In this document: positions 1-38,400 of the stretch, one piece after another | Numbering within the stretch: position 1 is the first letter of the stretch | Layout of the letters: each line of letters opens with the position of its first letter | From: Mizuhopecten yessoensis | Lineage: Eukaryota | Assembly: GCF_002113885.1 (NCBI RefSeq) | Contig: NW_018403488.1 | Span: 6,260-70,259 of the forward strand | Direction of reading: 5' to 3' | Length of the DNA: 64,000 nt | Notes under the pieces: generated by a model | Database searches by the model: none | Told to the model about the DNA's origin: nothing | What the model saw: the letters and a program-made list of their open reading frames with translations, nothing else | Translations under genes and position numbers: made by a program

Positions 1-2127
1 TTATGCATACCCTAATAGCCTACAATGCATGTCCCCGTTTCTGTGGGTTACAGTAATTGTACATGCATTCCCTAATAGCCTACACTGCATTTCCCCGCTT
101 CTGTGTGTTAAAATAATTGTACATGCATACCCTAATAGCCTACACTGCATTTCCCCGCTTCTGTGTGTTAAAGTAATTGTACATGCATACCCTAATAGCC
201 TAGAGTGCATTTCCCCGCTTCTGTGGGTTACAGTAATTGTCCATGCATACCCTAATAGCCTACACTGCATTTCCCCGCTTCTGTGTGTTAAAGTAATTGT
301 ACATGCATACCCTAATAGCCTAGAGTGCATTTCCCCGCTTCTGTGGGTTACAGTAATTGTACATTCATACCCTAATAGCCTACAGTGCATTTCCCCGCTT
401 CTGTGGGTAACAGTAATTGTACATGCATACCCTAATAGCCTACAATGCATGTCCCCGTTGCTGTGGGTTACAGTAATTGTACATGCATTCCCTAATAGCC
501 TACACTGCATTTCCCCGCTTCTGTGTGTTAAAGTAATTGTACATGCATACCCTAATAGCCTACATTGCGTTTCCCCGCTTCTGTGGGTTACAGTAATTGT
601 CCATGCATACCCTAATAGCCTACACTGCATTTCCCCGCTTCTGTGATTCACAGTAATTGCCCTAAATTGATGATATCTGTTCGTGTAGGCATATCCTAAT
701 AGCCTACAGTGCGTTTCCCCGCTTCTGTGGTTTACAGTAATTGAACATGCATACGATAATAGCCTACACTGCATTTCCCCGCTTCTGTGGGTTACAGTAA
801 TTGTACATTCATACCCTAATAGCCTACAGTGCATTTCCCCACTTCTGCGGGTTACATGTACAGTAATTGTACATGCATACCCTAATAGCCTAGAGTGCAT
901 TTCCCCGCTTCTGTGTGTTACAGTAATTGTTTATGCATACCCTAATAGCCTACAATGCATGTCCCCGCTTCTGTGTGTTACAGTAATTGTACATGTATAC
1001 TCTAATAGCCTACAGTGCATTTCCCCACTTCTGCGGGTTACATGTACAGTAATTGTACATGCATACCCTAATAGCCTACAATGCATGTCCCCGTTTCTGT
1101 GGGTTACAGTAATTGGACATGCATTCCCTAATAGCCTACAGTGCATGTCCCCACTTCTGTGGGTTACAGTAATTGTACATGCATACCCCAATAGCCTACA
1201 GTGCATTTCCCCGCTTCTGTGTGTACAGTAATTGTACATGCATACCCTAATAGCCTAGAGTGCATTTCCCCGCTTCTGTGGGTTACAGTAATTGTACATG
1301 CATCCCCTAATAGCCTACAGTGCTTTTTCCCGCTTCTGTGGGTTACAGTAATTGTAAATGCATATCCTAATAGCCTACAGTGCGTTTCCCCGCTTCTGTG
1401 TGTTGCAGTAATTGTACATGCATACCCTAATAGCCTAGAGTGCATTTCCCCGCTTCTGTGTGTTACAGTGATTGTTTATGCATACCCTAATAGCCTACAA
1501 TGCATGTCCCCGCTTCTGTGTGTTACAGTAATTGTACATGTATACCCTAATAGCCTACAGTGCATTTCCCCGCTTCTGTGGGTTACAGTAATTGTCCATG
1601 CATACCCTAATAGCCTACACTGCATTTCCCCGCTTCTGTGGGTTAAAGTAATTGTACATGCATACCCTAATAGCCTAGAGTGCATTTCCCCGCTTCTGTG
1701 GGTTACAGTAATTGTCCATGCATACCCTAATAGCCTACACTGCATTTCCCCGCTTCTGTGATTCACAGTAATTGCCCTAAATTGATGATATCTGTTCGTG
1801 TAGGCATATCCTAATAGCCTACAGTGCGTTTCCCCGCTTCTGTCGGTTACAGTAATTGTACATGCATACCCTAATAGTCTACAGTGCGTTTCCCCGCTTC
1901 TGTGGGTTACAGTAATTGTCCATGCATACCCTAATAGCCTACACTGCATTTCCCCGCTTCTGTGGGTTACAGTAATTGTAAATGCATATCCTAATAGCCT
2001 ACAGTGCGTTTCCCCGCTTCTGTCGGTTACAGTAATTGTACATGCATACCCTAATAGCCTACACTGCATTTCCCCGCTTCTGTGATTAACAGTAATTGCC
2101 CTAAATTGATGATATCTGTTCGTGTAG
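1..2127. repeat. 60-bp minisatellite array, truncated by the window edge; lies in intron 1 of methyltransferase copy A
   Basis: Unit CCTAATAGCCTACACTGCATTTCCCCGCTTCTGTGGGTTACAGTAATTGTACATGCATAC repeats in register with the 60-nt lines, about 35 units. Confidence 0.97.
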
Positions 2128-2930
2128 ATTATATTTAAACTTTACAATAAAAGCTACCCGTTTGAGAAAGTTTACATTGTTAGTGAATATGCGCGATGCT
2201 GATGTTCACACGTGAAAAGTTCTTATATATTTGTATTTCTGAACGTTTTTTACGTAACTTTATTTAATTATTTATGACATTGTTTATGTCAATGTGTAGA
2301 AGAATTTAGTTTTTTCTATCAATTTACTATTCTTTTGTCTTTATGTATGGTACGATTGTATCAATGTGCGATCGTATTGAACGAGATTTGTTTTAATGCC
2401 TGGTATTTAATATCTGTTCTATTTTTGTTAGTGCATGGTATTTTTGTATTGTTGGTTCATTTGTCCTACATGTTTATATGAATAAACAACATAAATGTTC
2501 CGTTGAAGTAGAACACAAATACATTTACATTGGACAAGATATTTAACATAAAAATGTATAAATAAATATCATTCAACAGTGGAAGACGGTCACTGTTTCG
2601 GTATGTAAACCTGATTTCAGTCAACACCTTTGCCCAGCTTATATTTCCTGGTTTATATTCAATCAAACTCGGACTATTGTTAAGTTCTGTTTTTTCATAC
2701 TCATGGTTAAATGATCTGTTATTTTTTGACAACAATTGAAGAAGACCATAACGCATGTTTGCGAATACGTAGGTTAAACAGTGGATCTTATTTATTTTTC
2801 CTAAAGTATGTCATTTCAATTATGTAACCAAAGTCATAGTAATTATACATGTATGTACTTTAACACTTAATAGCCTTTTACGTTTACCTGTCACGATAAC
2901 AAAAAGGTTGTAGACAATACTGATCGATTT

Positions 2931-4953
2931 CTTCTTCCCCTCCCTCCCGTAACCTTTATAGAAACAACTGTCTTTCCCTCCCTCCCGTAGCCTTTATATA
3001 AACCAACTGTCGTCCCCTTCCTCCCGTAACCTTTATAAAAACAACTGTCTTCCCCTCCCTCCCGTAACCTTTATAGAAACAACTGTCGTCCCCTTCCTCC
3101 CGTAACCTTTATAAAAACAACTGTCTTCCCCTTCCTCCTGTAACCTTTATAAAAACAACTGTCTTCCCCGTTCTCCCGTAACCTGTATAGAAACAACTGT
3201 CTTCCCCTCCCTCCCGTAACCTTTATAGAAACAACTGTCTTTCCCTCCCTCCCGTAACCTTTATATAAACAACTGTCTTTCCCGCCATCCCGTAACCTTT
3301 ATAGAAACAACTGTCNNNNNNNNNNNNNNNNNNNNNNNNNNNNNNNNNNNNNNNNNNNNNNNNNNNNNNNNNNNNNNNNNNNNNNNNNNNNNNNNNNNNN
3401 NNNNNNNNNNNNNNNNNNNNNNNNNNNNNNNNNNNNNNNNNNNNNNNNNNNNNNNNNNNNNNNNNNNNNNNNNNNNNNNNNNNNNNNNNNNNNAGAAACA
3501 ACTGTCTTCCCCTTCCTCCCGTAACCTTTATAGAAACAAATGTCTTTCCCTCCATCCCGTAACCTTTATAGAAACAACTGTCTTCCCCTTCCTCTCGTAA
3601 CCTTTATAGAAACAACTGTCTTCCCCTCCCTCTCGTAACCTTTATAGAAACAACTGTCTTCCCCTCCCTTCCGCAATCTTTATAGAAACAACTGTCTTTC
3701 CCTTCCTCCCGTAACCTTTTTAAAAACAACTGTCTTCCCCTCCCTCCCGTAACCTTTATAGAAACAACTGTCTTTCCCTTCATCTCGTAACCTTTATAAA
3801 AACAACTGTCTTCCCCTCCCTCCCGTAACCTTTATAGAAACAACTGTCTTCCCCTTCCTCCCGTAACCTTTACAGAAACAACTGTCTTCCCCTTCCTCCC
3901 GTAACCTTTATAGAAACAAATGTCTTTCCCTCCATCCCGTAACCTTTATAGAAACAACTGTCTTCCCCTTCCTCCCGTAACCTTTATAGAAACAACTGTC
4001 TTCCCCTCCCTCTCGTAACCTTTATAGAAACAACTGTCTTCCCCATCCTCCCGTAACCTTTATGGAAACAACTGTCTTTTCCTACATCCCGTAACCTTTA
4101 TAGATACAACTGTCGTCCCCTTCATCCCGTAACCTTTATAGAAACAACTGTCTTCCCCTTCCTCCTGTAACCTTTATAGAAACAACTGTCGTCCCTTTCC
4201 TCCCGTAACCTTTATAGAAACAACTGTCTTCCCCTCCCTCCCGTAACCTTTATAGAAACAACTGTCTTCTCCTCCCTCTCGTTACCTTTATAGAAACAAC
4301 TGTCTTCCCCTTCCTCCTGTAACCTTTATAGAAACAACTGTCGTCCCCTTCATCCCGTAACCTTTATAGATACAACTGTCTTCCCCTCCCTCCCGTAACC
4401 TTTATAGAAACAACTGTCTTCCCCTTCCTCCTGTAACCTTTATAGAAACAACTGTCTTTCCCTCCATCCCGTAACCATTATAGATAAAACTGTCTTCCCC
4501 TCCCTCCCGTAACCTTTATAGAAACAACTGTCTTCCCCTTCCTCCTGTAACCTTTATAGAAACAACTGTCGTCCCCTTCCTCCCGTAACCGTTATAGAAA
4601 CAACTGTCTTCCCCTCCCTCCCGTTACCTTTATAGAAACAACTGTCTTCTCCTCCCTCTCGTTACCTTTATAGAAACAACTGTCTTCCCCTTCCTCCTGT
4701 AATCTTTATAAAAACAACTGTCTTCCCCATTCTCCTGTAACCTTTATAGAAACAACTGTCTTTCCTTCCATCCCGTAACCTTTATATAAACAACTGTCTT
4801 TCCCGCCATCCCGTTACCTTTATAGAAACAACTGTCTTCCCCTTCCTCTCGTAACCTTTATGGAAACAACTGTCTTCCCCTCCCTCCCGTTACCTTTATA
4901 GAAACAACTGTCTTCCCCTCCCTCCCGTAACCTTTATAGAAACAACTGTCTTC
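2931..4953. repeat. 38-bp minisatellite array containing an assembly gap
   Basis: Unit CCCGTAACCTTTATAGAAACAACTGTCTTCCCCTCCCT; successive starts at 3061 and 3099. Confidence 0.97.
3316..3493. other. Assembly gap (N run)
   Basis: Run of n characters inside the 38-bp array. Confidence 1.
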
Positions 4954-5885
4954 TTTGAGTACGGGCACGGTTCATCCAACACCCATTTTATTCATTGTTA
5001 CTTTGCCTACACACAGTACGTTAAGCTGTGGCAATGCTTAAGCAGGAGAGGAAGCAGTATTTGTTGGTAACATGATATAACTAGACTGCACCAATGTTTT
5101 CAAACCATATAATTACTACAATCCACCCAGTGTACGGTAACATAGCACACCCTCATCACCTACATTGAAATATTCCTCTTTTGTGAGTCACATTAGATGT
5201 CCTTCACCCAACACATTTGTGTAATACTCATCCGCTAGAGATGGTTTACGTTCTTGTTTGATTGGATGCTGTTGATTTCTCTACGCGGAAAGATTTTGTT
5301 TGATTTGTTTGTATTCCTGAACGTTATTTTTCGCAATTGTAGTGTGATTATTGATTATGCTTGTTATGAAATAGGTCTTTGCTTGTTCCTGTTTTTAATT
5401 TTTGTCTTACAATATGCCCATTGTTTTCGCCTTTGTGTGTGGTACGTTAGTGTATATGTGCGATCTTTTATTTTACCAATACGTGATTTTTGATAAATAT
5501 TATTTGTGTTGTAAATGCACGGTATTTTTACCTAATGCATCGTGCGTCTTATTTTGTTTATCTGTGGTGCATTTAGTGTTAAAATTTGCCATGTTTTCGT
5601 CTCTGGTTTTGTAATACATTTCTCCTACGTGTACATATTATTAAACAACAAGACTTCCCCGTTGATCAAAAAAACATTGCATTAGACAAAATATTATACA
5701 CAAAAATACACATAAAGGTATTTTTAAAGTTTTTTAAATAAATTCAACAGTGGAAGTCGATTACCTGTTTGGCAGGCAAGCATGAGTGTAGTCAACACCA
5801 CTAGTCAGCTTACATATATTACGTGGATTAAATTCAATTAAACTTTTCTGCATACTCAACGTTCAATAACCTGGCAAATCGTTGG

Positions 5886-7700
5886 CAGACACCCAGCTGC
5901 CATATGGATGTGTGACAGACATCCAGCTGTCATATGGATGTGCAACAGACACACATCTGTCATATGGATGTGTGACATACACCCATCTGTCATATGGATG
6001 TGTGACAGACATCCAGCTGTCATATGGATGTGTGACATACACCCATCTGTCATATGGATGTGTGCATACACCCATCTGTCATATGGATGTGTGACATACA
6101 CCAATCTGTCATATGGATGTGTGACAGACATCCAGCTGTCATATGGATGTGTGTAGACACTCAGCTCTCACGTTGATGTGTGACAGACACCCAGCTGTCA
6201 CGTGGATGTGTGATAGACACCCAGCTGTCACATGGATGTGTGACAGACATCCAGCTGGCATATGGATGTGTGCAGACACTCAGCTCTCACGTTGATGTGT
6301 GACAGACACACAGCTGTCACGTGAATGTGTGACACACACACAGCTGTCATATGATGTGTGACAGACACACAGCTGTCATATGGATGTGTGACAGACACCC
6401 AGCTGTCATATGGATGTGACAGACACTCAGCTGTCATGTGGATGTGTGACAAACACAGCTGTCATATGATGTGTGACAGACACCCAGCTGTCATATGATG
6501 TGTGACAGACACACAGCTGTCACGTGAATGTGTGACACACACACAGCTGTCATATGATGTGTGACAGACACACAGCTGTCATATGGATGTGTGACAGACA
6601 CCCAGCTGTCATATGGATGTGACAGACACTCAGCTGTCATGTGGATGTGTGACAAACACAGCTGTCATATGATGTGTGACAGACACCCAGCTGTCATATG
6701 ATGTGTGACAGACACACAGCTGTCACGTGAATGTGTGACACACACACAGCTGTCATATGATGTGTGACAGACACACAGCTGTCATATGGATGTGTGACAG
6801 ACACCCAGCTGTCATATGGATGTGACAGACGCTCAGCTGTCATGTGGATGTGTGACAAACACAGCTGTCATATGATGTGTGACAGACACCCAGCTGTCAT
6901 ATGATGTGTGACAGACACACAGCTGTCACGTGAATGTGTGACACACACACAGCTGTCATATGATGTGTGACAGACACACAGCTGTCATATGGATGTGTGA
7001 CAGACACCCAGCTGTCATGTGGATGTGTGACAAACACACAGCTGTCATATGATGTGTGACAGACACACAGCTGTCATATGGATGCGTGACAGACACCCAG
7101 CTGTTATATGGATGTGACAGACGCATAGCTGCCACGTGAATGTGTGACACACACACAGCTGTCATATGGATGTGTGACAGACACCCAGCTGTCATATGGA
7201 TGTGACAGACACTCAGCTGTGATGTGGATGTGCGACAGACACTCACCTGTCATATAGATGTGTGACAGACGCTCAGCTGTCACGTGGATGTGTGACAGAC
7301 ACACATCTGTCACGTGAATGTTTGACAGACACCCTTCTGTCAGGTGGATATGTGACAGACACCCTTCTGTCATGTGGATGTGTGACAGACACACAACTGT
7401 CACGCATATGTGTGACAGACAACCAGCTGTCACGTGGATATGTGACAGACAACCAACTGTCATATGTTTCAGTGACAGACACACAGCTGTCAGGTGTATG
7501 TGTGACAAACACACAGCTGTCACGTGGATGTGTGACAGACACCCAGCTGTCACGTGGATTTGTGACAGACACCCAGCTGTCATGCTGGTGTGTGACAGAC
7601 ACACACCCGTCACGTGTATGTGTGATAAACACACAGCTGTCACGTGAATGTATGACTGACAACCAGCTGTCTCGTGTTTGTGTGACAGATACGTTGTGTG
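5886..7700. repeat. About 30-bp minisatellite array
   Basis: Unit TGTGACAGACACCCAGCTGTCATATGGATG with 28-30 bp variants, about 60 units. Confidence 0.96.
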
Positions 7701-8404
7701 ACAGATACATATCTGTCACTTGTACAATGTATGTATGACATAGTAGTATTGTATCACATGGAAGACAGTACATGTGCTAGTGCCTTATAGGAACATTAAT
7801 TCAATTTAATTTATTAAATCGGATATAAAACTGAAATAGCGCAAAATGTACAAATAACTGATTACAGGTAAAGGTAAGATATCGGAAATATCTAAAACAA
7901 AATAAGAGAAAATGTCAAAGTTGTAGTGATTGTGTGTAAATTAGGCAATTGGACTAAATATTTCTGACATATAACTACAACTGTATCTACAGGTGCGCAG
8001 TATTCAAATTCAGTTTTTCACATTCGTCAGTTTCGTTACTGTTGCATCATTTCTATTGGAAATTATCATGTAAACAAAATTTGCATTGATCTACGTTTTC
8101 TTAACATACGCATTCGAAAGCTACGGTAATACCTTACGCAATGTACACTGCAATCCTGCTCTGACAACTGTGTCAGATTGGGGTGTGCTTAGTAACACAT
8201 AGAACACGATACAGCGGAGGTAAGAGAGTCTAAGTGTACACCTCTTGTATGTTCTATTTTACATCTAGGGATAAACAGAATAAAGCAGAAAACGGTTAAT
8301 TTGTTAAATAATGATCAGTTGCTGGTGGTTTATTACCTGCAATTACTTCCTTTTGAACACAATGCAAAAGATAGGACGAATGATGTACTTTGTGCATGGA
8401 CCAT

Positions 8405-10003
8405 TTCTATGTATGTCCGTATCGCGCAGGCTTAACGGTCCGACTTGTGATGTACTACGTGTGATTATATATAATTTCCTCCCTCTGTGGGTATGTCCGT
8501 ATCGCGCTGGCTTACCGGTCCGACTTGTGATGTATTACGTGTGATTTCCTCCCTCTGTGGGTATGTCCGTATCGCGCTGGCTTACCGGTCCGACTTGTGA
8601 TGTAATACGTGTGATTACCTCCCTCTGTGGGTATGTCCGTATCGCGCTGGCTTACCGGTCCGACTTGTGATGTAATACGTGTGATTACCTCCCTCTGTGG
8701 GTATGTTCGTGTCGCGCAGGCTTACCGGTCCGACTTGTGATGTACTACGTGTGATTATATATAATTGCCTCCCTCTGTGGGTATGTCCGTATCGCGCAGG
8801 CTTACCGGTCCGACTTGTGATGTATTACGTGTGATTATATATAATTACCTCCCTCTGTGGGTATGTCTGGGAGTAGATGGGCTGTATGGTCTGACTAGTG
8901 AATATTACGTGAAATTATCTCCCTTTGTAGGTATGCCCGGGAGTGGCTGGGCTGTATGGTCTGACTAGTGAATTATTACGTGTAATCATCTCCCTTTGAA
9001 GTTATGTCCGCGAGTGGCTAGGCTGTATGGTCTGACTAACGATGTATTACGTGTAATTATCTCCCATTGTAGGTATGCCCGGGAGTGGCTAGGCTGTATG
9101 GTCTGACTATTGAATTATTACGTGTTATTATCTCCCTTTGTAGGTATGCCCGGGAGGGGCTAGGCTGTATGGTCTGACTAACGATGTATTACGTGTAATT
9201 ATCTCCCTTTGTAGGTATGCCCGGGAGTGGCTAGGCTGTATGGTCTGACTAACGATGTATTACGTGTAATTATCTCCCTTTGTAGGTATGTCCGCGAGTG
9301 GCTTGGCTGTATGGTCTGACTAACGATGTATTACGTGTAATTACCTCCCTTTGTAGGTATGTCCGCGAGTGGCTTGGCTCTATGGTCCGTCTAGTGAATT
9401 ATTACTTTGTATTCTTCAATGCTTGGTGCAGTACAATTCACAGAGGCAGGGCAGGTGGCATTCTTATTGAAGTTACTTTATATATTGATGAAAACTATTA
9501 TTACACAAGGAATAATTTACAGAAAAACATAGAAACTTACTTTGTAACTGCCTGGAATACTTTAAAGACAAATAGATAGAGCTTGTGATCAGCTTGGCAG
9601 GCAGGAGTCTAACTGACCTAACAATGATATTCCCGCCAAGACTGACCAACAAGGGATTATAAAAATAGCGACCAATAAAAAGCAAGACAAAACATGGACT
9701 CTTGACTTAAATCACTGGGCGTAAACTGTTACACTGAAAATAACAACACATTACACAAAATACATAGAACACCGCACCCTGTAACATGTAACGCCAACAA
9801 ATGGACAAACACATACACAAAACACACTGGGAACATACAAATGGATATTTATACACAATTATAACATTTACTATAAATGACAATAAAATTGACCCTGTTA
9901 CAGGTATGTGCGCGAATGGCTTGGCTGTATGATCCGTCTAGTGAATTATTACGTGTAATTATCTCCCTTTGTAGGTATGTCCGGGAGTGGCTGGGCTGTA
10001 TGG
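8405..10003 (+). repeat. 70/71-bp minisatellite built from the intron1/exon2 splice-acceptor junction (copy A); interrupted by an insertion at about 9410-9895
   Basis: Unit ...TACGTGTAATTATCTCCCTTTGTAG|GTATGTCCGGGAGTGGCTGGGCTGTATGGTC...; the last unit is the real acceptor and the start of exon 2 at 9975. Confidence 0.93.
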
Positions 10004-10162
10004 TCGCCACCAGGATCGTTTCACTGGATGACTCAGACAAATACTTCATCCCACAGTCACTAAAACCGGGACTGAAAGCTCTGGGTTTCACATTTTTCTA
10101 TCCTGTCATGGGTCCTTTTACAGACAAAGCGAGGAACTGCTTCAAAAAGGACGGGCCTAAAG
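9975..10162 (+). CDS. Rv2258c-like SAM-dependent methyltransferase, copy A, exon 2
   Basis: TTTGTAG|G...AAAG|GTAGG, 188 nt; encodes (R)YVREWLGCMVATRIV...NCFKKDGPKG. ERYVREWL matches the N-terminal winged-helix region of the Rv2258c family as I recall it. Same length as copy B exon 2. Confidence 0.92.
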
Positions 10163-10320
10163 GTAGGTGTTTTGCAGTAGTATACAATGTCCTGTTATAA
10201 GTTTCCTAGCAGATACATACATTTTTCTTTTTCCCAAACATACACCCAGAAACAGTCAAAATTAATTAACCATTTATTAAATCATAATAAAATGTGACGT
10301 ACCAATCTTATGTTTTATAG

Positions 10321-10431
10321 GTTTTGGCTATGGAGACATGCCACCTGGTGTTGTTGAAGCCATTGAAGAGAAAACAGGGGACCCTGACAGCATTGTAGAG
10401 GAGCTCCTTAAGCCGATCACCAAGCCCATAG
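10321..10431 (+). CDS. Methyltransferase copy A, exon 3
   Basis: TTTTATAG|GT...ATAG|GTAAG, 111 nt, phase 1-1; encodes GFGYGDMPPGVVEAIEEKTGDPDSIVEELLKPITKPI. Confidence 0.92.
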
Positions 10432-10878
10432 GTAAGCTTTCTATGTATTTAGTGAACATCAATGAGTTAACATCATAGCTCATAGTTACATTGTTAGGTT
10501 AGTGTTTTTCTTACTACGCCCAGTCGATGTCCTTTCATACATTACATCGGCTTATAGACCAAGCTTACCATAATGGTGGTTTGGTATTTCCCCGTCTCAC
10601 AAGAGCTCTAACGATATAAATAGACTCGTGAAGTTTGTAATTTCGAGAGATCATGTAAAGAAAAGTTTATTTTGAACACTAGAATTCAATCTTCTTCAGA
10701 CTTTGCATTTTTATTGTATCAAATATATATGTTTCTAGTAAACGACACATGCATTGAAAACATACAATCAAACTTGTAGGTGTGAAAATTGTTGATTCCT
10801 TGAGAAATTAAGGAACGCTAGATGTTAGTTTATATTAAAAAAAAAAAAAAGAGGTCTTACTGAGTGTGTAACTTTCAG

Positions 10879-11444
10879 AGTCGTTGAACACCATACTTGA
10901 CCTAGGCTGTGGAGGAGGATGTGCAACTAGAGCGTTAAGAAAGCGTTTTCCAAAGGCAGTCATATACGGCGTCGATTATAGCGAGGATGCGCTAACCAAA
11001 GCAAAATCAACTGCCAAAGCTCAAGGCACAGAAAACCTGCATTTTGTAAAGGAAGACGTGACATCATTGCCCGCCGACTGGACAGGGAAGTTTGACTGGG
11101 TCATCCTGTTAGACGTGCTTCATGATCTGCCTGATCCAGTTAATGCCATGAAAGAGGTTCGCCGCGTCTTGAAGGACGACGGAGTCGTGTCCATCGTTGA
11201 TCCAGACCTACATAGTAGCCATAGAGACAACATAGGAGATGCTAACTTGGCAGGTGTAGGGTACGCCATCAGTTCTGTGATTTGTCTCCCTTGCAGTTTG
11301 TCGATAGACGGCGCAGCTGGTCACGGCATGGGCTGGGGAACCGAAAACAAAGAAAAGTTTTTAACCGGTTCTGGCTGGCTAGTGCAGGACAAACGAAATA
11401 TCGAAAGTCCGTTTGCTTTGAACTTCACTTGTGTCAAAGCATAA
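10879..11444 (+). CDS. Methyltransferase copy A, exon 4 (class I SAM-binding domain, ends at stop)
   Basis: ACTTTCAG| acceptor in phase; motif I ILDLGCGGG, then YGVDYS, FDWVILLDVLHDLPDP and LKDDG. Confidence 0.95.
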
Positions 11445-14400
11445 CCAAAGAACTAGCAAGTGAATCTCAGCATGTTAAGATATTACTCTTTTCTTCCGGG
11501 GAAAATGCTTTTAACCAGATATTGCTTTGAGAACACCAGACACTGTATATATAAGAGATAGTATACAGCACAGCTTTTTATCAAATATTATCACAACACT
11601 AAACGCGACGATGTAACAGCTGTACACATTTTCCAATTCAACATTAAATTTTCTCCTAAAAACTATATCTCGGAATTCTTGGATTGTGTTAAGACTATTA
11701 GAAATAAGACTTTACATTTCGATTAAGGAAGAATGCTTGTTGAAGTAATATAGTGTACACGCGATACTGATAACACAGTAAACCACAGCATCAACATGAA
11801 AGGTAGAACTCTACCTCACCATCATGTAAGTGGTGAAACTGGGACAAGTTTTATGTCTGTGAAATAATCTGTATGTATGACGACATTTGAGTCAGATTGT
11901 AATGCACTTTTTTGTAAAATAGCAATTAATCAGTAAATGGGAATATGGTTTTTCTTGAGTAGGTCATCTCTAAGTTACGTCATCGAGTCATACCATTAAG
12001 ATAACCCTAAACATGTGTCATAAGCTTGACCTTAAACGCACATCATCAGGATGACCTTAAGGTCGAGCTGTTACGTTGGCCCTAAGGTCAAGCTGACACG
12101 ATTACCTTAAAACATAGATTTAAGTCAAACAGTTATGAACGGATTATTATTTTATTTTTATCAATAAGTTATTTATCTACAACTAAAGCTTACTGTTTAA
12201 CGTTATACAGTCGTAGTTGATAAAAATATGAATGTTGTTCTCTTCTATGATGTCCGTGTTTTATTAGATTAGGAAAACAACTGATATTTAAATATTCATA
12301 GGTGATTTTTTTTTTTTACCATGATACGGGCAAGTATGCAGAGGACACACTGTGTAAGCAACCTGTGTTGACCCTTGTGTGTGATTCTTGTGGGGGTTTT
12401 CTGTGATATTATGTAAACAGAACAGCCACCAAACAGCTGTAGTCGTTTGAGTGTTTGATTCGATGGTCTGTACTGGGTTATTTGAAGTGAACTGCTGAGC
12501 TGCACGGTCCAAATACAACTTGGCGACAAGCAGTAAACATGCAACAAAAGAGAAAGAATAGTACATGCATTCGTCAAGAAAATGTATACATGTCTTTATT
12601 TGCTTGTGAGAGTTTTGATGCCAATTTGTTTTCGAACTCTAATTATCAAATTAGACTATATGTGATTGACATCTTACACAGGACAACCAATCAAAATGGA
12701 AAATCGTATGTCGTGTTTGGAATGTATTAAATTTATACTAACAATAGTAGCAAAACATAATAAGTCTCATAGATGTTTGATACATGTAACTAAGTAACAT
12801 ATTGTTATTCTATCTATTGATAACTGAATAAAAAGCATATTTGGAAACAAAGCGTTGAGTTTATCTGGGTTAATTGATCCCGTGTTACCATCCTGTCTGA
12901 ACTACGGATGTTCCAATGAACAAGTAACGGTATGTGACAGTGAGAAACAGGGGAAGAGACTTGGTCCAATGCAAATGGAGTGAACATATTAAAAAAGGAT
13001 TCTTTTCGCATACAAATCGATTTATTACACAAATCAAAGTATATGTTCGGTCAGCGTTAGACCAAACATTACGTTGAAGGGTCATGATGGTGAACAGCCA
13101 AACTCAACTGATTGGGATTAGGATGGTAACCTGGGGTCAAGGGGCGAAAATACGACGAACAGTAGTTGAAGGCGTACATTAACCACATACTTTTTATTGC
13201 AGCAGGGACTTATTACAGGAACATGAACGATACATACACATACATGGAAAATGTATTTACGATGAAATTCTTACACTTTACTTAGCCTAACTCTTGCCTA
13301 ACTAAATATCTAAGACTTGCATGTTCGACAATAAAAGCTCTTCTCGTCTTATTGTTTAGGAATCTATAAAATTTAATAAAAAAAATACTGTAGAAAATTT
13401 TATTTATTACATATAATACATGTCTACAAAAATTCGATTCCGTATGTTATACGTGAAGGAAATGTGTATTTTTTGGTTTTGAACATATTTTAATGTTTTT
13501 CTGTTGGTCTATGTGACCTGGTGGGGGTCAAGATCTTTTGATTTCAGAAGATAAACGGACGGTTATCAATTCTGGCAACCTGCCATATATCAAGACGCAA
13601 ACGTCGACATTTTGGATTATATTTGATAGTGTGCCTTGTTATTTCGTAGTCACTACCCTGGTTCTCGCGATGAGAACATGACATTATTGGATTTGAACTT
13701 CATGAACACGACAGCTGTCGTCGATGAAACAGTAGACGTTTAACCTTCTGGCCCACCTGGTCTTATTATCTTGAGCTTTTCAAGTACCTCCATTTAAGCA
13801 TATATGTTCATATTTCGCCATCTTATTATCATTTTTGAGTTGGAATTTCTGTTTAGTTGAAACTATTTATTCCATTGGTTTATTATTTTAGTTGATTGAA
13901 TTCAGATAGTGATAAATTTAGGCGATCATGTAACAACGGGACTGTGTTTTTTTATTTTGATATTATTTTTCTTTTCTGATGGCTATTCGGCCATCACAAA
14001 TTAATACTTTTTCAGATAGATTAGAGGCACATTCTATTTATAAATGTACATTACTGAATAATGAACTCAAATAAGGAGAGATGTCAAATGCTTGTAAGTA
14101 AAGAAAGGACATAAGGATAAAGATGTAGAAACAAAGATAGTATATAAAAAAAATCAACGTAGCAAGCTTTCACTCTGAATTCAGAAAAGGAATCCCATAT
14201 TAAGTCAGACGTTGGTTTTCTTATATCTTTTCATATTTATTCATATACCGATAACAAAATTTGATGCATGGACCTATTATTCTCTACTGTATATTGCACA
14301 TTTTAAACTGTGTTAAAACACTCGATGAAATAGTAAACATGGCAAGACTTAACTTTATGGAAAGGTTAACAACAGGCCGTTCGTCATGCTCTACTTCTTA

Positions 14401-14779: not shown

Positions 14780-16632
14780 GTTGAAATTACATCACTGTTA
14801 CCAGTAGGTTAGCCTACATCAAGGTAAACAACAGTTAGTTTAACCTACATCACTGTTAAAAAAAGGTTAGACTACGTCACTGTTAACAAAAGTTGGACTA
14901 CAACACTGTTACCAGAAGGTTAACCCTACATCACTGTAAAATAAATTTGACTATGTCACTGTTACCAATAAGTTAACCTACATCACTGTAAACAAACGGT
15001 ATGTTACATCATTATTACCAGTATGTTAGACTACATCACTGTTACCAGTAGGTTAGGCTACATCACTGTAAAAAAACGTAAGAGTACATCACTGTTACCA
15101 GTAGGTTAGGCTACATCACTGTAAACAAAGGTAGACTACATCACTGTAAACAAAAGGTAGACCACATCACTGTTACCAGTAGGTATGCCAATATCACTGT
15201 TACCAGTAGGTTAGACTATATCACTGTAAACAAAGGTAGACTACATCATTGTTACCAGTAGGTAAGCCAATATCACTGTTACCAGTAGGTTAGGCTACAT
15301 CACTGTAAACAAAAGTAGACTACATCACTGTAAACAAAAGGTAGACCACATCACTGTTACAAGTAGGTATGCCAATATCACTGTTACCAGTAGGTTAGAC
15401 TACATCACTGTAAACAAAGGTAGACTACATCATTGTTACAAGTAGGTAAGCCAATATCACTGTTACCAGTAGGTTAGGCTACATCACTGTAATCAAAAGG
15501 TAGACTCCATCACTGTTACCAGTAGGTTAGGCTACATCACTGTAAACAAAGGTAGACTACATCACTGTAAACAAAGGTAGACTACATCATTGTTACAAGT
15601 AGGGAAGCCAATATCACTGTTACCAGTATGTTAGCCTACATCACTGTTACCAGTAGGTTAGGCTACATCACTGCAAACAAAGGTAGACTACATTACTGTT
15701 ACCAGTAGGGAAGCCAATATCACTGTTACCAGTATGTTAGCCTACATCACTGTTACTGCTAGATTAGACTACATCACTGTTACCAGTATGTTAGCCTACA
15801 TCACTGTAAACAAAGGTAGACTACATCACTGTTACCAGTAGGTTAGGCTACATCACTGTAAACAAAGGTAGACTCCATCACTGTTACCAGTAGGTAAGCC
15901 AATATCACTGTTACCAGTATGTTAGCCTACATCACTGTTACCAGTAGGTTAGGCTACATCACTGCAAACAAAGGTAGACTACATCACTGTTACCAGTAGG
16001 TAAGTCAATATCACTGTTACCAGTATGTTAGCCTACATCACTGTTACCGCTAGATTAGCCTACATCACTGTAAACAAAAGTTAGACTTCATCACTGTAAA
16101 CAAAGGTAGACTCCATCACTGTTAACAAAAGTTAGACTACATTTAAAATATATTTTATTGATTAAACAAAAGGATTGAGCAACAGGCTTTGCCTATATAA
16201 GCTCTCTCCATGGCTTCAGGTTAGACTACATCACTGTTACCAGTAGGTAAACCTACATCACTGTAAACAAAAGTAACACTTCATCACTGTTACAAGTAGG
16301 TAAACCTACATCACTTTAAACAAAAGTTAGACTCCATTACTGTTATCAGTAGGTAAGCCAATATCACTGTTACCAGTAGGTTAACCTACATCACTGTAAA
16401 CAAAAGTAACACTTCATCACTGTTACCAGTAGGTAAACCTACATCACTGTAAACAAAAGTTAGACTCCATCACTGTTATCAGTAGGTAAACCTACATCAA
16501 GGTAAATAAAAGTTAGAATACCTCACTGTTACCAGTAGGTAAACCTACATCACTGTAAACAAAAGTTAGACTCCATCACTGTTACCAGTAGGTAAACCTA
16601 CATCAAGGTAAGCAAAAGTTAGACTACCTCAC
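14780..16632. repeat. 22-23-bp minisatellite array (copy A)
   Basis: Alternating CTACATCACTGTTACCAGTAGGTTAG and CTACATCACTGTAAACAAAGGTAGA variants; short A/T-rich insertion at about 16140-16218. Confidence 0.93.
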
Positions 16633-16734
16633 TATAAAGAAAGTGAGCCGGGGGATTTTTTGTTTCCCCCTTTTTTAACACATCTTTCATAATAACTATG
16701 TTTTAGCAGAAAAGCCACACAACAACTAAACTGT

Positions 16735-19599: not shown

Positions 19600-21210
19600 G
19601 ACGTTACTGTGGTAACTAGTACAGTGTTGTTACCGAGACAGACGATGTCACACAATAAAATTGTAGTAACTAGGACGGACGCTGTGGTAACTAGTTCAGT
19701 GTTGTTACCGAGACAGACGATGTGACACAATTAAGTGTAGTAACTAGGACGGACATTGTGGTAACTAGGACAGTGTTGTTACCGAGACAGACGATGTGAC
19801 ACAATTAAAGTTTAGTAACTAGGACGGACATTGTGGTAACTAGTACAGTGTTGTTACCGAGACAGACAATGTTACACAATTAAAGTGTAGTAACTAGGAC
19901 GGACATTGTAGTAACTAGTACAGTGTTGTTACCGAGACAGACGATGCGACACAATTAAAGTGTAGTAACTAGGACGGACATTGTGGTAACTAGGACAGTG
20001 TTGTTACCGAGACAGACGATGTGACACAATTAAAGTGTAGTAACTAGGACGGACATTGTGGTAACTAGTACAGTGTCGTTACCGAGACAAACGATGTGAC
20101 ACAATTAAAGTGTAGTACAAATGTAACTAGGACGGACATTGTGGTAACTAGTACAGTGTTGTTACCGAGTCTGACGATTTGACACAATTAAAGTTTAGTA
20201 ACTAGGACGGACGTTGTATTAAATAGTACAGTGTTGTTACCGAGACAGACGATTTGACACAATTAAAGTTTAGTAACTAGGACGGACGTTGTATTAAATA
20301 GTACAGTGTTGTTACCGAGAAAGACGATGTGACACAATTAAGTGTAGTAACTAGGACGGAGTTTGTGGTAACTAGTACAGTGTCGTTAGCGGGACAAACG
20401 ATGTGACACAATTAAAGGGTAGTAACTAGGACGGAGGCTGTGGTAACTAGTACAGTGTTGTTACCGAGACAGACGATGTCACACAATTAAAGTTTAGTAA
20501 GTAGGACGGACGTTGTATTAACTAGTACAGTGTTGTTACCGAGACTGACGATTTGACACAATTAAAGTGTAGTTACTAGGACGGACGTTGTGGTAATTAG
20601 TACAGTGTTGTTACCGAGAAAGACGATGTGACACAATTAAAGTGTAGTAACTAGGACGGACGTTGTGGTAACTAGTACAGTGTTGTTACCGAGACTGACG
20701 ATGTGACACAATTAAAGTGCAGTAAGTAGGACAGACGTTGTGGTAATTAGTACAGTGTTGTTACCGAGACAGACGATGTGACACAATTAAAGTGTAGTAA
20801 CTAGGACGGACGTTGTATTAACTAGTACAGTGTTGTTACCGAGACTGACGATGTGACACAATTAAAGTGTAGTAAGTAGGACAGACATTGTGGTAATTAG
20901 TACAGTGTTGTTACCGAGACAGACGATGTGACACAATTAAAGTGTAGTAACTAGGACGGACGTTGTGGTAATTAGTACAGTGTTGTTACCGAGACAGACG
21001 ATGTGACACAATTAAAGTGTAGTAACTAGGACGGACATTGTGGTAACTAGTACAGTGTTGTTACCGAGACAGACGATGTGACACAATTAAAGTGTAGTAA
21101 CTAGGACAGACGTTGTGGTAACTAGTACAGTGTTGTTTTCGAGACAGACGATGTGACACAATAAAAGTGTAGTAACTAGGACGGACGTTGTGGTAGCTAG
21201 TACAGTAGTG
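19600..21210. repeat. 75-bp minisatellite array (copy A; heterogeneous units)
   Basis: Unit ACACAATTAAAGTGTAGTAACTAGGACGGACGTTGTGGTAACTAGTACAGTGTTGTTACCGAGACAGACGATGTG. Confidence 0.96.
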
Positions 21211-27050: not shown

Positions 27051-27217
27051 ATGGATTTGGAAACATATTCTAAAATCATTACAGATTTTATTGCTGGAAG
27101 TTACATCACCTCTGCCATCAGGCTAGGAAAGGACCTGGGACTTTTTGATGAGCTAAAGAAACTTGACAAAGCCGTCTCTTCACAGCAGTTAGCAGACGCT
27201 TGTAATCTGAAAGAGAG
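27051..27217 (+). CDS. Methyltransferase copy B, exon 1 (not in the ORF track)
   Basis: AAAATGG start; encodes MDLETYSKIITDFIAGSYITSAIRLGKDLGLFDELKKLDKAVSSQQLADACNLKE(R); ends AG|GTAAG in phase 2 and joins G-TAT of exon 2 to give LKERYVREWL. Confidence 0.92.
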
Positions 27218-30479: not shown

Positions 30480-32470
30480 TTTATGATGTATTATGTGCAG
30501 GGAACTTTCTTTTTTAATGTATTTCCGAGAAGACGCAGGCATACTTGTCTAACTTATATGATGTATTACGTGTTATTATCTCCCTTTGTAGGTATGTCCG
30601 GGATTGGTTGGGCTGTTTGGTCTGATTAGTGGTGTATTACCTGTTACTATCACCCTTAATATGTATGTCCAGAATTGGCGTAGCTGTATGGTCTGCCTAT
30701 TGATTTATTGCGTGTTATTATCTCCCTTTGTATTTAGTCCGGGATTGGCTTGTCTATTGATGTATTACGTGTAATTACCTTCCTTTAAAGTTAGTCCGGG
30801 AGTGGCTTGGCTGTACGGCCTGACTATTGCTGTATAACGTGTAATTACCTCCCTTTGTAGTTAGTCCGGGAGTGGCTTGTCTGTACGGCCTGACCATTGG
30901 TGTATTACGTGTAATAATCTCCCTTTGTAGTTAGTCCGGGAGTTGCTTGGGTGTACGGCCTGACTATTGCTGTATTACGTGTAATAATTTCCCTTTGTAG
31001 TTAGTCCGGGAGTTGCTTGGGTGTACGGCCTGACTGTTGATGTATAACGTGTAATTATCTCCCTTTGTAGTTTGTCCGGAATTGGCTTGACTGTAAGGCC
31101 TGACTATTTATATATTACGTGTAATTATCTCCCTTTGTAGTTTGTCCGGGAGTGGCTGGGCTGTACGGCCTGGCTATTGATATATTACTTGTAATTATCT
31201 CCCTTTGTAGTTAATCCGGGAGTGGGTGGGCTGTACGGCCTGACTATTGATGTATTGCGTGTAATTATCTCCCTTTGTAGTTAGTCCGGGAGTGGCTTGG
31301 GTGTACGGCCTGACTGTTGATGTATAACGTGTAATTATCTCCCTTTGTAGTTAGTCCGGGAGTGGCTGGGCTGTACGGCCTGGCTATTGATGTATTACGT
31401 GTAATTATCTCCCTTTGTAGTTAGTCCGGAAGTGGGTGGGCTGTACGGCCTGACTATTGATGTATTACGTGTAATTATCTCCCTTTGTAGTTAGTCCGGG
31501 AGTGGCTTGGGTGTACGGCCTGACTGTTGATGTATTACGTGTAATTATCTCCCTTTGTAGTTAGTCCGGGAGTGGCTGGGCTGTACGGCCTGGCTATTGA
31601 TGTATTACGTGTAATTATCTCCCTTTGTAGTTAGTCCGGAAGTGGGTGGGCTGTACGGCCTGACTATTGATGTATTAAGTGTAATTATATCCCTTTGTAG
31701 TTAGTCCGGGAGTGTAAGTTTTAGAATCTTCCGACTGTAGTCAGATTCCCATACAATCAACAAATAAATTCACGTCTGGATTTTCGAATTAACTTCCAAA
31801 AATTACTCCCTCGTGGAGGTCAAGGTCGGATTCACGGTGTTCACTGTAAATACCATACAAAAACAGTTCAATGCTTAATTATCTCCCACTGTAGGTTTGT
31901 CCAGGACTCGCTGGGTTGATGGTCTTACTATTGATGTATTACAATTACGTAGGTATGTCCAGGAGTGTTTGGGCGGTATGGTCAGACTATCGATATATTA
32001 CGTGCAATTTCCAACCTTTGTGATATTTCTGGGATCGGCTGGGCTGTATAGTCTGACTAGTGATGTATTACAATTAGTTATCTCCCTTTGTAGGTATTTC
32101 AGGGAGTGGATGGGCAGTACTGTCCTACTATTGGTGCATTACGTGTAATTTTCTCCCTTTGTAGGTACAGTATGTATGTCCGCGAGTGGCTTGGTTGTAT
32201 GGTCTTACGTGTTATCTCTCTTCGAATGTATGCCCGGGAGTGGCTGGGCTCTTTGGTCTGACTAGTGATGTATAACGTGTAATTACCTCCCTTTGTATGT
32301 ATGTCCGCTAGTGGCTTGTCCGTATGGTCTGACTAGTGATGTATTACGTGTACTTATCTCCCTCTGTAGGTATGCCCGGGAGTGGCTTGGCGGTATGGTC
32401 TTACTTGTGATGTATTATGTGTTATTATCTCCCTTTGTAGGTATGTCCGGGAGTGGCTTGGCTGTATGGT
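30480..32470 (+). repeat. 70-bp splice-acceptor-derived minisatellite (copy B); interrupted at about 31714-31875
   Basis: Unit GTAATTATCTCCCTTTGTAG|TTAGTCCGGGAGTGGCTTGGGTGTACGGCCTGACTGTTGATGTATAACGT, about 25 units; the last unit is the real acceptor at 32440. Confidence 0.93.
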
Positions 32471-32628
32471 CGCCACCAGGATCGTTTCACTAGATGACTC
32501 GGACAAATACTTCATCCCTCAGTCACTCAAATCGGGACTTGACGTTCTTGGTTTAACATTTTTCTATCCTGTCATGGGTCCTTTAACAGTCAAAGTGAAG
32601 AACTGCTTCAAAAAGGACGGGCCTAAAG
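32441..32628 (+). CDS. Methyltransferase copy B, exon 2
   Basis: TTTGTAG|G...AAAG|GTAGG, 188 nt; encodes YVREWLGCMVATRIV...KDGPKG. Confidence 0.93.
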
Positions 32629-37694: not shown

Positions 37695-38400
37695 ACATCA
37701 CTGTTACCAGTAAGTAAAACTACATCACTGTAAACAAAAGGTAGACTACATCACTGTTACCAGTAGGTTAACCTACATCAATGTAAACAAAAGCAAGACT
37801 CTATCACTGTTACCAGTAGGTTAACCTACATCACTGTAAACAAAATGTAGACTACATCACTGTTACCAGTAGGTTAAGCTACATCACTGTAAACAAACGT
37901 TAGACTACATCACTGTTACCAGTAGGTTAACCTACCTCACTGTAAACAAAAGGTAGACTACATCACTGTTACCAGTAGGTTAACCTACATCACTGGAAAC
38001 AAAAGGTAGACTACATCACTGTTACCAGTAGGTTAACCTACCTCACTGTAAACAAAAGGTAGACTACATCACTGTTACCAGTAGGTTAAGCTACATCACT
38101 GTAAACAAACGTTAGACTACATCACTGTTAGCAGTAGGTTAACCTACATCACTGTAAACAAACGTTAGACTACATCACTGTTACCAGTAGGTTATCCTAC
38201 ATCACTGTAAACAAAAGGTAGACTACATCACTGTTACAAGTAGGTAAGCCAATATCACTGTTACCAGTAGGTTAGGCTACATCACTGTAAACCAAAGGTA
38301 GACTACATCACTGTTACCAGTAGGTTAGCCTACATCACTGTAAATAAAAGTAAGACTACAACCCTAGCTGTTACCAATAGGTAAGCCTACATCACTGTTT
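37695..38400. repeat. 22-23-bp minisatellite array (copy B counterpart of 14780-16632)
   Basis: Same CTACATCACTGT-based units, mostly regular dimers. Confidence 0.93.

Follow-up and report, generated by a model that had tools for sequence, protein, structure and literature searches.

A minisatellite of decoy splice acceptors before exon 2 in a scallop methyltransferase gene family

Introduction

When the end of an intron has been turned into a tandem repeat whose units resemble its own acceptor, which of these sites is joined to the preceding exon, and does the repeat serve the gene that carries it? The question is raised by a stretch of 64,000 nucleotides of the Mizuhopecten yessoensis genome, referred to here in its whole length as the window. 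Positions 8405-9974 of the window are a minisatellite with units of 70, 71 or 80 bp, located at the end of intron 1 of a SAM-methyltransferase gene (copy A), immediately before exon 2.

Organization of the host gene

The host gene has four exons and encodes an Rv2258c-like winged helix (PF21320) together with a class I SAM methyltransferase domain. The PF21320 model comprises 75 positions, and searching the exons singly assigned positions 6-39 to exon 1 and 40-67 to exon 2, with intron 1 cutting the profile at position 39/40. A tandem paralogue, copy B, lies about 22.5 kb downstream of copy A, and the two are colinear from positions 7736 and 29843 onward. The features of both genes are listed below; here and throughout the text a slash within a motif marks the splice joint.

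9975..10162, + strand: exon 2 of copy A, which starts GTATGTCC and encodes (R)YVREWLGCMVATRIV...; PF21320 match with E=3e-6, RNA junctions
10321..10431, + strand: exon 3 of copy A; raw reads and contigs show a GT..AG joint at either end
10879..11444, + strand: coding part of exon 4 of copy A; Methyltransf_31, Methyltransf_11 and Methyltransf_25 matches with E=1e-21 to 1e-27, TAA at 11442-11444
27051..27217, + strand: coding part of exon 1 of copy B, from the ATG at 27051 to ...GAGAG/gtaaga
30559..32440, + strand: junction array of copy B, from Tandem Repeats Finder and reading of the units
32441..32628, + strand: exon 2 of copy B, from Pfam

Exon 4 of copy A is also matched by Methyltransf_12 (Pfam), and it is followed after 11444 by a 3' UTR with RNA depth to 11700.

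Exon 1 of copy A was found neither in the window (tblastn) nor in contig C161. The 30 letters that precede the joint in RNA reads ending at 9975 match the genome exactly once, at C76420:34989-35018, where an exon-1 paralogue with the donor GAGAG/gtaagc has its 3' end; exon 1 of copy A thus ends in ...GAGAG, as does exon 1 of copy B. The end of C76420 and the start of C161 lie within one 60-bp minisatellite and have 20 identical letters. That C76420 might be a haplotig of C161 was considered and rejected, its exon 2 being only 69% identical to that of copy A. C76420 is the upstream neighbour of C161, as established by the satellite common to their ends and by the RNA junction that links them. 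With exon 1 of copy A on C76420, intron 1 therefore measures at least about 17.3 kb and extends over two contigs.

Anatomy of the junction array

Intron 1 of copy A is rich in repeats. Tandem repeat makes up 67% of positions 1-9974, and 36% of the window consists of tandem repeat with a period of 10 or more. The segments at the end of the intron are the following:

1..8404, + strand: intron 1 of copy A before the array, as far as the window includes it; unrelated 60-, 38- and 30-bp minisatellites predominate (Tandem Repeats Finder)
8405..8860, + strand: distal sub-array of 70- or 80-bp units, about 6.5 in number, whose junctions read GG/GTATGTCCGTATCGCG and whose exon-like part has diverged
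8861..9405, + strand: proximal sub-array, 7.5 units of 71 bp, with junctions from 8861 (GG/GT) to 9357
9410..9902, + strand: fragment of 493 bp of a dispersed repeat, 5'-truncated, internally deleted and inserted in the array
9903..9974, + strand: last decoy unit (junction 9904), also the true 3' end of intron 1, with AG at 9973-9974

Tandem Repeats Finder reported the array as 8474-8836 (period 70, score 573), 8684-8867 (period 80) and 8842-9405 (period 71, 8 copies, 89% matches, score 820). The unit consists of about 40 nt of the end of intron 1 and the first 30 nt or so of exon 2. Its intron part is CTGACTAAC or CTGACTAGT, then TTACGTGTAATTAYCTCCCTTTGTAG, with a branch-point-like CTGAC or CTAAC, a pyrimidine tract and AG; its exon-like part is GTATGYCCGGGAGTGGCTNGGCTGTATGGTC. 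Each unit also contains TTACGTGTAA, a motif with an ACGT core. The preliminary description of this DNA had read the unit as the tract, the AG and about 30 nt of exon 2, the real exon being the last unit, and the register of the units with 9975 bears this out: real exon 2 (9975-10162) is the terminal unit of the array.

Junctions of the form AG/GTATG have their first exon-like base at 8931, 9073, 9144, 9215, 9286, 9357 and 9904, the real one being at 9975. At these seven decoys, as at the real site, tccctttgtAG/GTATGY juxtaposes a 3' and a 5' splice-site motif (tract-AG/GTRWGT). The seven intact YAG/GTATG decoys reported earlier were recovered within 1-2 nt of their positions, and so was the change of AG to GG in the distal units, with GG/GTATG at 8491, 8561, 8631, 8701, 8781 and 8861. 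The remaining forms are a single AAG/TTATG junction at 9002 and the AT/GTATG of the first partial unit at 8411. Splice-site strength was judged by direct comparison of these near-identical sequences. From -11 to +31 the decoys are within 1-3 nt of the real site; over these 42 nt, decoys 9215 and 9286 differ from it by 2 nt and have better branch-point matches. In addition, GTATGT is identical to GTAAGT at five of six positions, and the same is true of the real exon-1 donor, GTAAGC.

The array owes one of its junctions to the dispersed repeat that splits it. This element has at least 30 genomic copies with 89-97% identity, and every copy ends in ...CCTGTTACA, with flanks that differ between copies. 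From this common end it follows that the AG at 9902-9903 is composed of the last A of the element and a G from the array; the pyrimidine tract of decoy 9904 is sequence of the element as well. At 9410 and 9541, RNA reads derived from other copies of the repeat produce loose ends.

An assembly artefact was ruled out as the source of the array by contigs of the independent run X2, which span parts of it with few differences, by the paralogues and by a second scallop genus.

The form of the junctions would allow recursive, self-correcting splicing, in which decoys would accept exon 1, the resulting GAGAG/GTATG would act as a donor and be spliced onward, and the array would be removed in steps. 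As stated in the preliminary description, the joining of an exon 1 ending in ...GAGAG to a decoy would regenerate AG/GTATG, and the sequence agrees with this, the form of a recursive or dual-specific site being present. The one to three nucleotides that separate decoys from the real junction and the donor match of GTATGT, equal to that of the exon-1 donor, speak for this reading. So does the intron itself: in at least 17 kb filled with satellites, stepwise removal might help and would explain why the expansion was tolerated. It has moreover been proposed that repeats with dual-specific sites do less harm, since splicing can remove them (PMC10809524).

The reading frame points to a different use of the same decoys. 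In the phase of exon 1 (...GAG AG + G), decoys 8931-9286 encode RY(A/V)REWLGCMV and then TGA, decoy 9904 reaches a stop after 18 codons, and all decoys of the copy A array lead to early stops; none of the unit lengths (70, 71 and 80) is divisible by 3. Both the immediate TGA and the frame-breaking unit length had been noticed before and hold in the phase of exon 1. According to a second reading, the array would be a copy-number rheostat, in which decoys divert transcripts to a premature stop and nonsense-mediated decay (NMD) or to a short peptide, and array length tunes expression. The early stop met from every decoy favours it. The peptide had been envisaged as consisting of the winged helix only, which is not what the sequence predicts: the product of joining exon 1 to a decoy would have about 67 residues and, as the PF21320 match goes on in exon 2 from position 40, an incomplete winged helix.

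The acceptor used in RNA

RNA-type runs from several studies contained 59-69% of the sampled words of 9975-11700, a region whose exonic share is about 65%. For the splice joints, RNA was compared with 7710-11700 in one raw-read run (X24) and three contig sets (X2, X3 and X14), all of them shallow and steady-state. The GT..AG joints 10162>10321 and 10431>10879 were present. Exon 1 was joined to 9975 in five raw reads of X24 and in a contig of X2, and a contig of X3 (880 nt, depth 193) runs continuously through exons 1, 2, 3 and 4. Copy A is expressed, and its mRNA uses the real acceptor at 9975.

No exon-1-to-decoy join was found in this shallow steady-state RNA (five junction reads in the raw-read run), in which 9975 was the only acceptor joined. 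Similarly, there were no loose ends at any decoy AG in the four steady-state runs and no joints inside the array, i.e., no unit-to-unit splicing was seen in them. RNA depth over 7710-9317 was zero in X24, X3 and X14. In X24, array-retaining RNA amounts to less than roughly 8% of mRNA, with 0 reads against about 40 expected on 1 kb at an exon-2 depth of about 6x. One contig of X14 covers 9637 to 10160 with no splice at 9975 and is then joined to exon 3; it represents either a retained intron end or a transcript start within the insert.

These results weigh against both of the above readings. Recursive splicing finds no exon-1-to-decoy read, no joint inside the array and no array coverage in the RNA examined, and stepwise removal, as the preliminary description had proposed it, is left unsupported by data in which exon 1 leads only to 9975. 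In the same way, diversion to NMD lacks any decoy-joined RNA in these shallow steady-state runs, and in the raw-read run array-containing RNA stays under the limit, roughly 8% of the exon-2 level. It must be considered that contigs lose rare variants, that NMD would clear decoy-spliced mRNAs and that recursive intermediates leave no trace in steady-state mRNA, the final product being identical. Any decoy use in copy A would therefore be rare, NMD-cleared or transient and recursive.

Paralogues and origin of the array

A search for the unit over the genome (988 Mb, 82,659 contigs) found it only on contigs that also bear the methyltransferase gene family. In all nine paralogues whose exon 2 starts AG/GTATGT, decoy units adjoin exon 2, their number per gene lying between at least 1 and 21. 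These counts come from a core (Hamming) scan, which in C2403 copy L008 detects the real site only; for this gene, the genome-wide unit search matches just 5' of exon 2. Across the nine paralogues, the decoys show a mixture of states (AG, GG, AA or AT, then GT or TT) with no pattern.

The array of copy B begins with one AG/GTATG unit, continues with 13 homogenised 70-bp TAG/TTAGTCC units, in which the tract and the AG are kept and the GT is lost, and ends in a degenerate proximal block with AT/GT and AG/GT units. In C5373, 12 near-perfect AG/GTATGTCC units fill a 3.5-kb intron. These C5373 units and the 13 of copy B are the only homogenised blocks (within-block identity 0.90-0.91); for the other units, divergence within arrays equals that between arrays. 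Mixed unit states together with two homogenised blocks look as expected of old arrays with local re-amplification, which is the usual turnover of minisatellites.

The gene family also includes members with no array. Three paralogues of a diverged subfamily (among them C4782 and C82020) encode RYVREWLGCM with the intron in an identical position and phase, with AG/ATACGT and unrelated, AT-rich intron ends, and no junction array was found in them. A second scallop genus (GCA_902652985.1), which provides the closest full-length relative, has two tandem genes, both with decoys before exon 2, among them a 45-bp sub-array that retains AG/GTATGTCC. In a more distant bivalve, which likewise encodes RYVREWLGCM, the intron has the same position and phase, a length of 895 nt and an AT-rich end (ttag/ATATGT at the joint), and no junction array was found in this gene. 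Relatives of 343-353 aa share the domains of the host gene. GTATGT corresponds to synonymous codons (AGG TAT GTC versus AGA TAC GTT) and is confined to the array-bearing subfamily.

Since the array-free paralogues and the distant bivalve encode equal residues at an equal intron position, the coding part is ancestral, and sequence comparison shows that the array is derived from the gene boundary, in the direction from exon to array. By the same comparison, its origin dates to one pectinid subfamily or earlier, and it was inherited across paralogues and the second genus. The opposite origin, an exonised dispersed satellite or mobile element, was rejected, the unit being private to the family and its coding part ancestral.

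The paralogues also bear on the two readings introduced above. Copy number varies widely among them, as a rheostat would allow, but many decoys have a disabled AG (GG, AA or AT) without any pattern. Taking this together with the RNA, we regard the rheostat as extremely unlikely. Recursive splicing gains from the restriction of the synonymous GTATGT to the array-bearing subfamily, although this correlation represents one evolutionary event. Against it stand the 13 units of copy B, which were amplified after the loss of GT with tract and AG kept and thus argue against the need for a donor.

Conservation of the decoy signals

When 59 decoys were set against the nine real sites, the array-weighted match to the consensus was 0.83 for AG and 0.91 for GT. 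By position it was 0.76 for G at -1, 0.65 for T at -3 and 0.94-0.97 from -4 to -7. The AG and GT of these 59 decoys, non-independent units collected with a junction-centred probe, are not kept above their neighbours (0.84-0.97). If anything, the decoy acceptor seems to erode. Recursive splicing is not favoured by signals that are conserved no better than the positions around them and, in the light of all the above, we consider it unlikely, with a small chance of being right.

Between paralogues, the 40 intron-derived nt of the unit show about the same conservation as its exon part. This agrees with a further reading, according to which the array has some other cis-regulatory role, as a landing pad for U2AF and U2 near the true acceptor or as an intronic enhancer of repeated factor sites. 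The branch-point-like CTGAC or CTAAC, the tract and the AG of each unit would suit the former, and the ACGT-core TTACGTGTAA would be a repeated site for the latter. Nevertheless, array turnover accounts for this conservation by copying the real boundary anew, the number of units varies between at least 1 and 21, and copy A is expressed with its array split by a mobile element. Such a role has no direct support in our data, and its probability is minimal.

The array as a probable mirage

The array can be explained by a type of repeat already known from amphioxus. Tandem repeats across an intron-exon boundary occur there in Adh3 and in the globins BflGb6 and BflGb9 under the name of "mirage" (PMC3087553), a term which that paper credits to its reference 68, on Adh3. 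In these repeats, the authentic boundary is terminal, many units have AG or GT and splicing is undisturbed (PMC3087553); they show concerted evolution and degenerate edges, and are found in more than one species (PMC3087553). All the mirage features that we looked for were observed in the scallop: the array is tandem, its boundary unit is terminal, it is derived from the gene and the authentic site is the one spliced in the RNA examined, which is of limited depth.

The array is probably a tolerated, neutral mirage minisatellite that is removed with intron 1, the real acceptor being used. A segment of about 71 bp across the boundary of intron 1 and exon 2 would have been duplicated in tandem, in a scallop genome in which minisatellites make up about one third of the sequence. 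Later turnover would have involved unequal exchange or slippage, local re-amplification, decay and one mobile-element insertion. Because the decoy copies lie 5' of the exon, they are intronic and lost together with intron 1. In the RNA examined, the spliceosome joins exon 1 to the last, exon-proximal acceptor at 9975, and the decoys would be silent pseudo-sites in spite of branch-point, tract and AG that match the real ones. As the decoys are as good as the real site, the choice of 9975 would depend on the downstream exon body and donor 10163: exon definition would favour the only acceptor that is followed by a real exon with a donor of its own. The array would then be a by-product, passed on through the duplications that built the gene family. 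Both the neutrality of the array and exon definition as the discriminator are what we infer from these data.

The preservation of the junctions can be read in another way. No member of the subfamily lacks intact AG/GTATG decoys, and the second genus has them too, which could reflect selection instead of inheritance. If the ladder had been kept for a function, the synonymous change would have created dual-specific rungs by which an intron of at least 17 kb could be removed step by step and with tolerance of errors, and this would explain the intact rungs in nine paralogues and in another genus. We hold such a history to be very unlikely. Should the ladder be functional, a minisatellite would have given rise to a natural ladder for recursive splicing, with many copies of the site.

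Comparison with known systems

The scallop array, which we take as a probable mirage, has in common with those of amphioxus the boundary-spanning unit, the terminal position of the authentic boundary and the retention of AG and GT. It differs from them in several respects. It is found in a bivalve, is common to a paralogue subfamily (nine genes, and two in the other genus) and is interrupted by a mobile element. The intron that it ends measures at least 17 kb and consists for the most part of other minisatellites, and the GTATGT of its junction doubles as a good donor consensus.

A similar situation on the donor side is known from intron 7 of human F7, where the end unit of a 37-bp VNTR spans the exon-intron boundary (Borensztajn et al., 2006; PMC1557585). 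The pseudo-donors of this intron are identical to the authentic one and functional but silent, the exon-proximal one being chosen (PMC1557585), and experiments showed that the donor is selected by scanning from 5' to 3' (PMC1557585). Both loci have a run of authentic-like splice sites of which the exon-proximal one is chosen. In F7, however, the donor side is duplicated and the evidence on selection is experimental, whereas in the scallop it is the acceptor side and exon definition is the rule that we infer.

Tandem repeats with dual-specific AGGT splice sites have been described in UBC and VCX3A (Duan et al., 2024; PMC10809524). There, as in the scallop, each unit bears an AG/GT that is a potential 3' or 5' splice site. 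The UBC units are coding, have lengths that are multiples of 3 and are demonstrably spliced between sites, and their expansions were argued to be tolerated through splicing out (PMC10809524). In contrast, the scallop units have 70, 71 or 80 nt, are intronic and run into stops in the phase of exon 1, and no splicing between them was seen.

Juxtaposed acceptor and donor motifs within a long intron also relate the decoys to the ratchet points of long introns in Drosophila and vertebrates (reviewed in PMC8605326). These are single, conserved sites documented by junction, lariat and saw-tooth evidence. The rungs of the scallop ladder are recent copies for which no extra conservation (in a weak test) and, in shallow steady-state RNA, no junction reads were seen. 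Rogers' model (PMC3265369, PMC4974935) derives intron gain from the tandem duplication of an AGGT segment. The tandem AG/GT duplication likewise gives paired splice signals in the scallop but, unlike in the model, no new intron; the copies lie within an ancient intron, whose position is conserved in the distant bivalve.

Significance of the array

Minisatellites that span a splice boundary had already been described and, with the gene spliced normally, the scallop array is a further case of little importance in itself. Its interest lies in the natural experiment that it offers on the choice of a 3' splice site, with up to a dozen acceptors 71 nt apart that have equal or better signals and, among these near-equal decoys, only the exon-proximal acceptor seen in mRNA. 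In this regard, the paralogues are a ready allelic series in the number of units, in AG intact or disabled and in GT present or lost, with one array split by a mobile element. The series is suited to tests of exon definition against scanning, and of whether dual-specific AG/GT sites make expansion harmless. For annotators, it must be noted that arrays of this type invite wrong boundaries of exon 2 and break assemblies, as illustrated by intron 1 of copy A with its two contigs.

Finally, the synonymous GTATGT, which represents a single evolutionary event, would fit a dual-specific site that makes the expansion tolerable via re-splicing.

Junction arrays in another scallop genus and in the paralogues

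Decoy units, the tandem copies of the intron 1/exon 2 junction that in the window precede exon 2 of copy A (one of two tandem winged-helix SAM-methyltransferase paralogues, A and B), were also found in a homologous gene:

L018:13824-14426 (GCA_902652985.1, LR736852.1, another scallop genus), about 10 decoy units before exon 2

Within this stretch, a sub-array with a 45-bp period (14146-14383) keeps only the tract and AG|GTATGTCCGGGAGTGGCTGGG, which indicates that arrays of different period arose repeatedly around one junction. The exon 2 start, R-Y-V, is written AG|GTATGT in all array-bearing paralogues and AG|ATACGT in the array-free L010, L011 and L012 (G000:C4782, C82020). On comparison of these sequences, the donor-like motif is a synonymous variant accompanying the arrays, as one evolutionary event. 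TTACGTGTAA, an ACGT-core, bZIP-like motif, lies about 20 nt upstream of the AG in every unit of window 8405-9405 and is also kept at the real intron 1/exon 2 boundary of all nine paralogues. Some of the paralogues look damaged:

G000:C2110:286800-296000 and C2403:709400-720900, damaged-looking paralogues L007, L008 and L009

Exon 1 of the C2403 copy could be matched only as two shifted pieces, stops included, in the second C2110 copy exon 2 is interrupted by a TAA or a frame break, and the second C2403 copy carries stops immediately upstream of exon 2. They are likely pseudogenes, in which decoy units are still retained.

Transcripts and the dispersed repeat in the copy A array

The copy A junction array is split by an insertion:

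Window 9410-9902, dispersed-repeat copy, 5'-truncated and internally deleted

Full copies of this repeat are about 1.2 kb or longer, and at least 30 copies (89-97% identity) were found, all with CCTGTTACA as the 3' terminus. RNA reads with foreign flanks stop at 9410 and 9541, and they reflect transcription from other copies of the repeat. Among the RNA contigs compared with window 7710-11700, one of 621 nt from run X14 (depth about 40) joins 9637-10160 to 10319-10414, so that the 9975 acceptor is crossed unspliced while the splice to exon 3 is present; seven differences from the reference lie within 9690-9832. An ATG at 9877, inside the 3' end of the element, is in frame with copy A exon 2. 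This contig may represent either an alternative start, whose protein product would lack the exon 1 half of the winged helix, or just a retained intron end.

Contig break and tandem-repeat content

Intron 1 of copy A is interrupted by a contig break:

G000:C76420:34854-36121 and G000:C161:1-120 (L021, L013), contig ends with a common 60-bp minisatellite

The last 20 nt of C76420 equal the first 20 nt of C161, both inside this minisatellite, and RNA shows exon 1, located on C76420, spliced to the exon 2 that starts at window 9975. C76420 and C161 are thus neighbours that the assembly separated within the 60-bp array.

The window (1-64000) holds 28 tandem arrays with a period of at least 10, which together cover 36% of it; one of them, at 50502-55040, has 216 copies of a 21-bp unit. 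Arrays downstream of copies A and B are common to both, with different copy numbers:

Window 14788-16633 and 37695-38398, 27/53-bp units, common to A and B
Window 19608-21206 and 40388-42960, 75-bp units, common to A and B (34 units in the latter)
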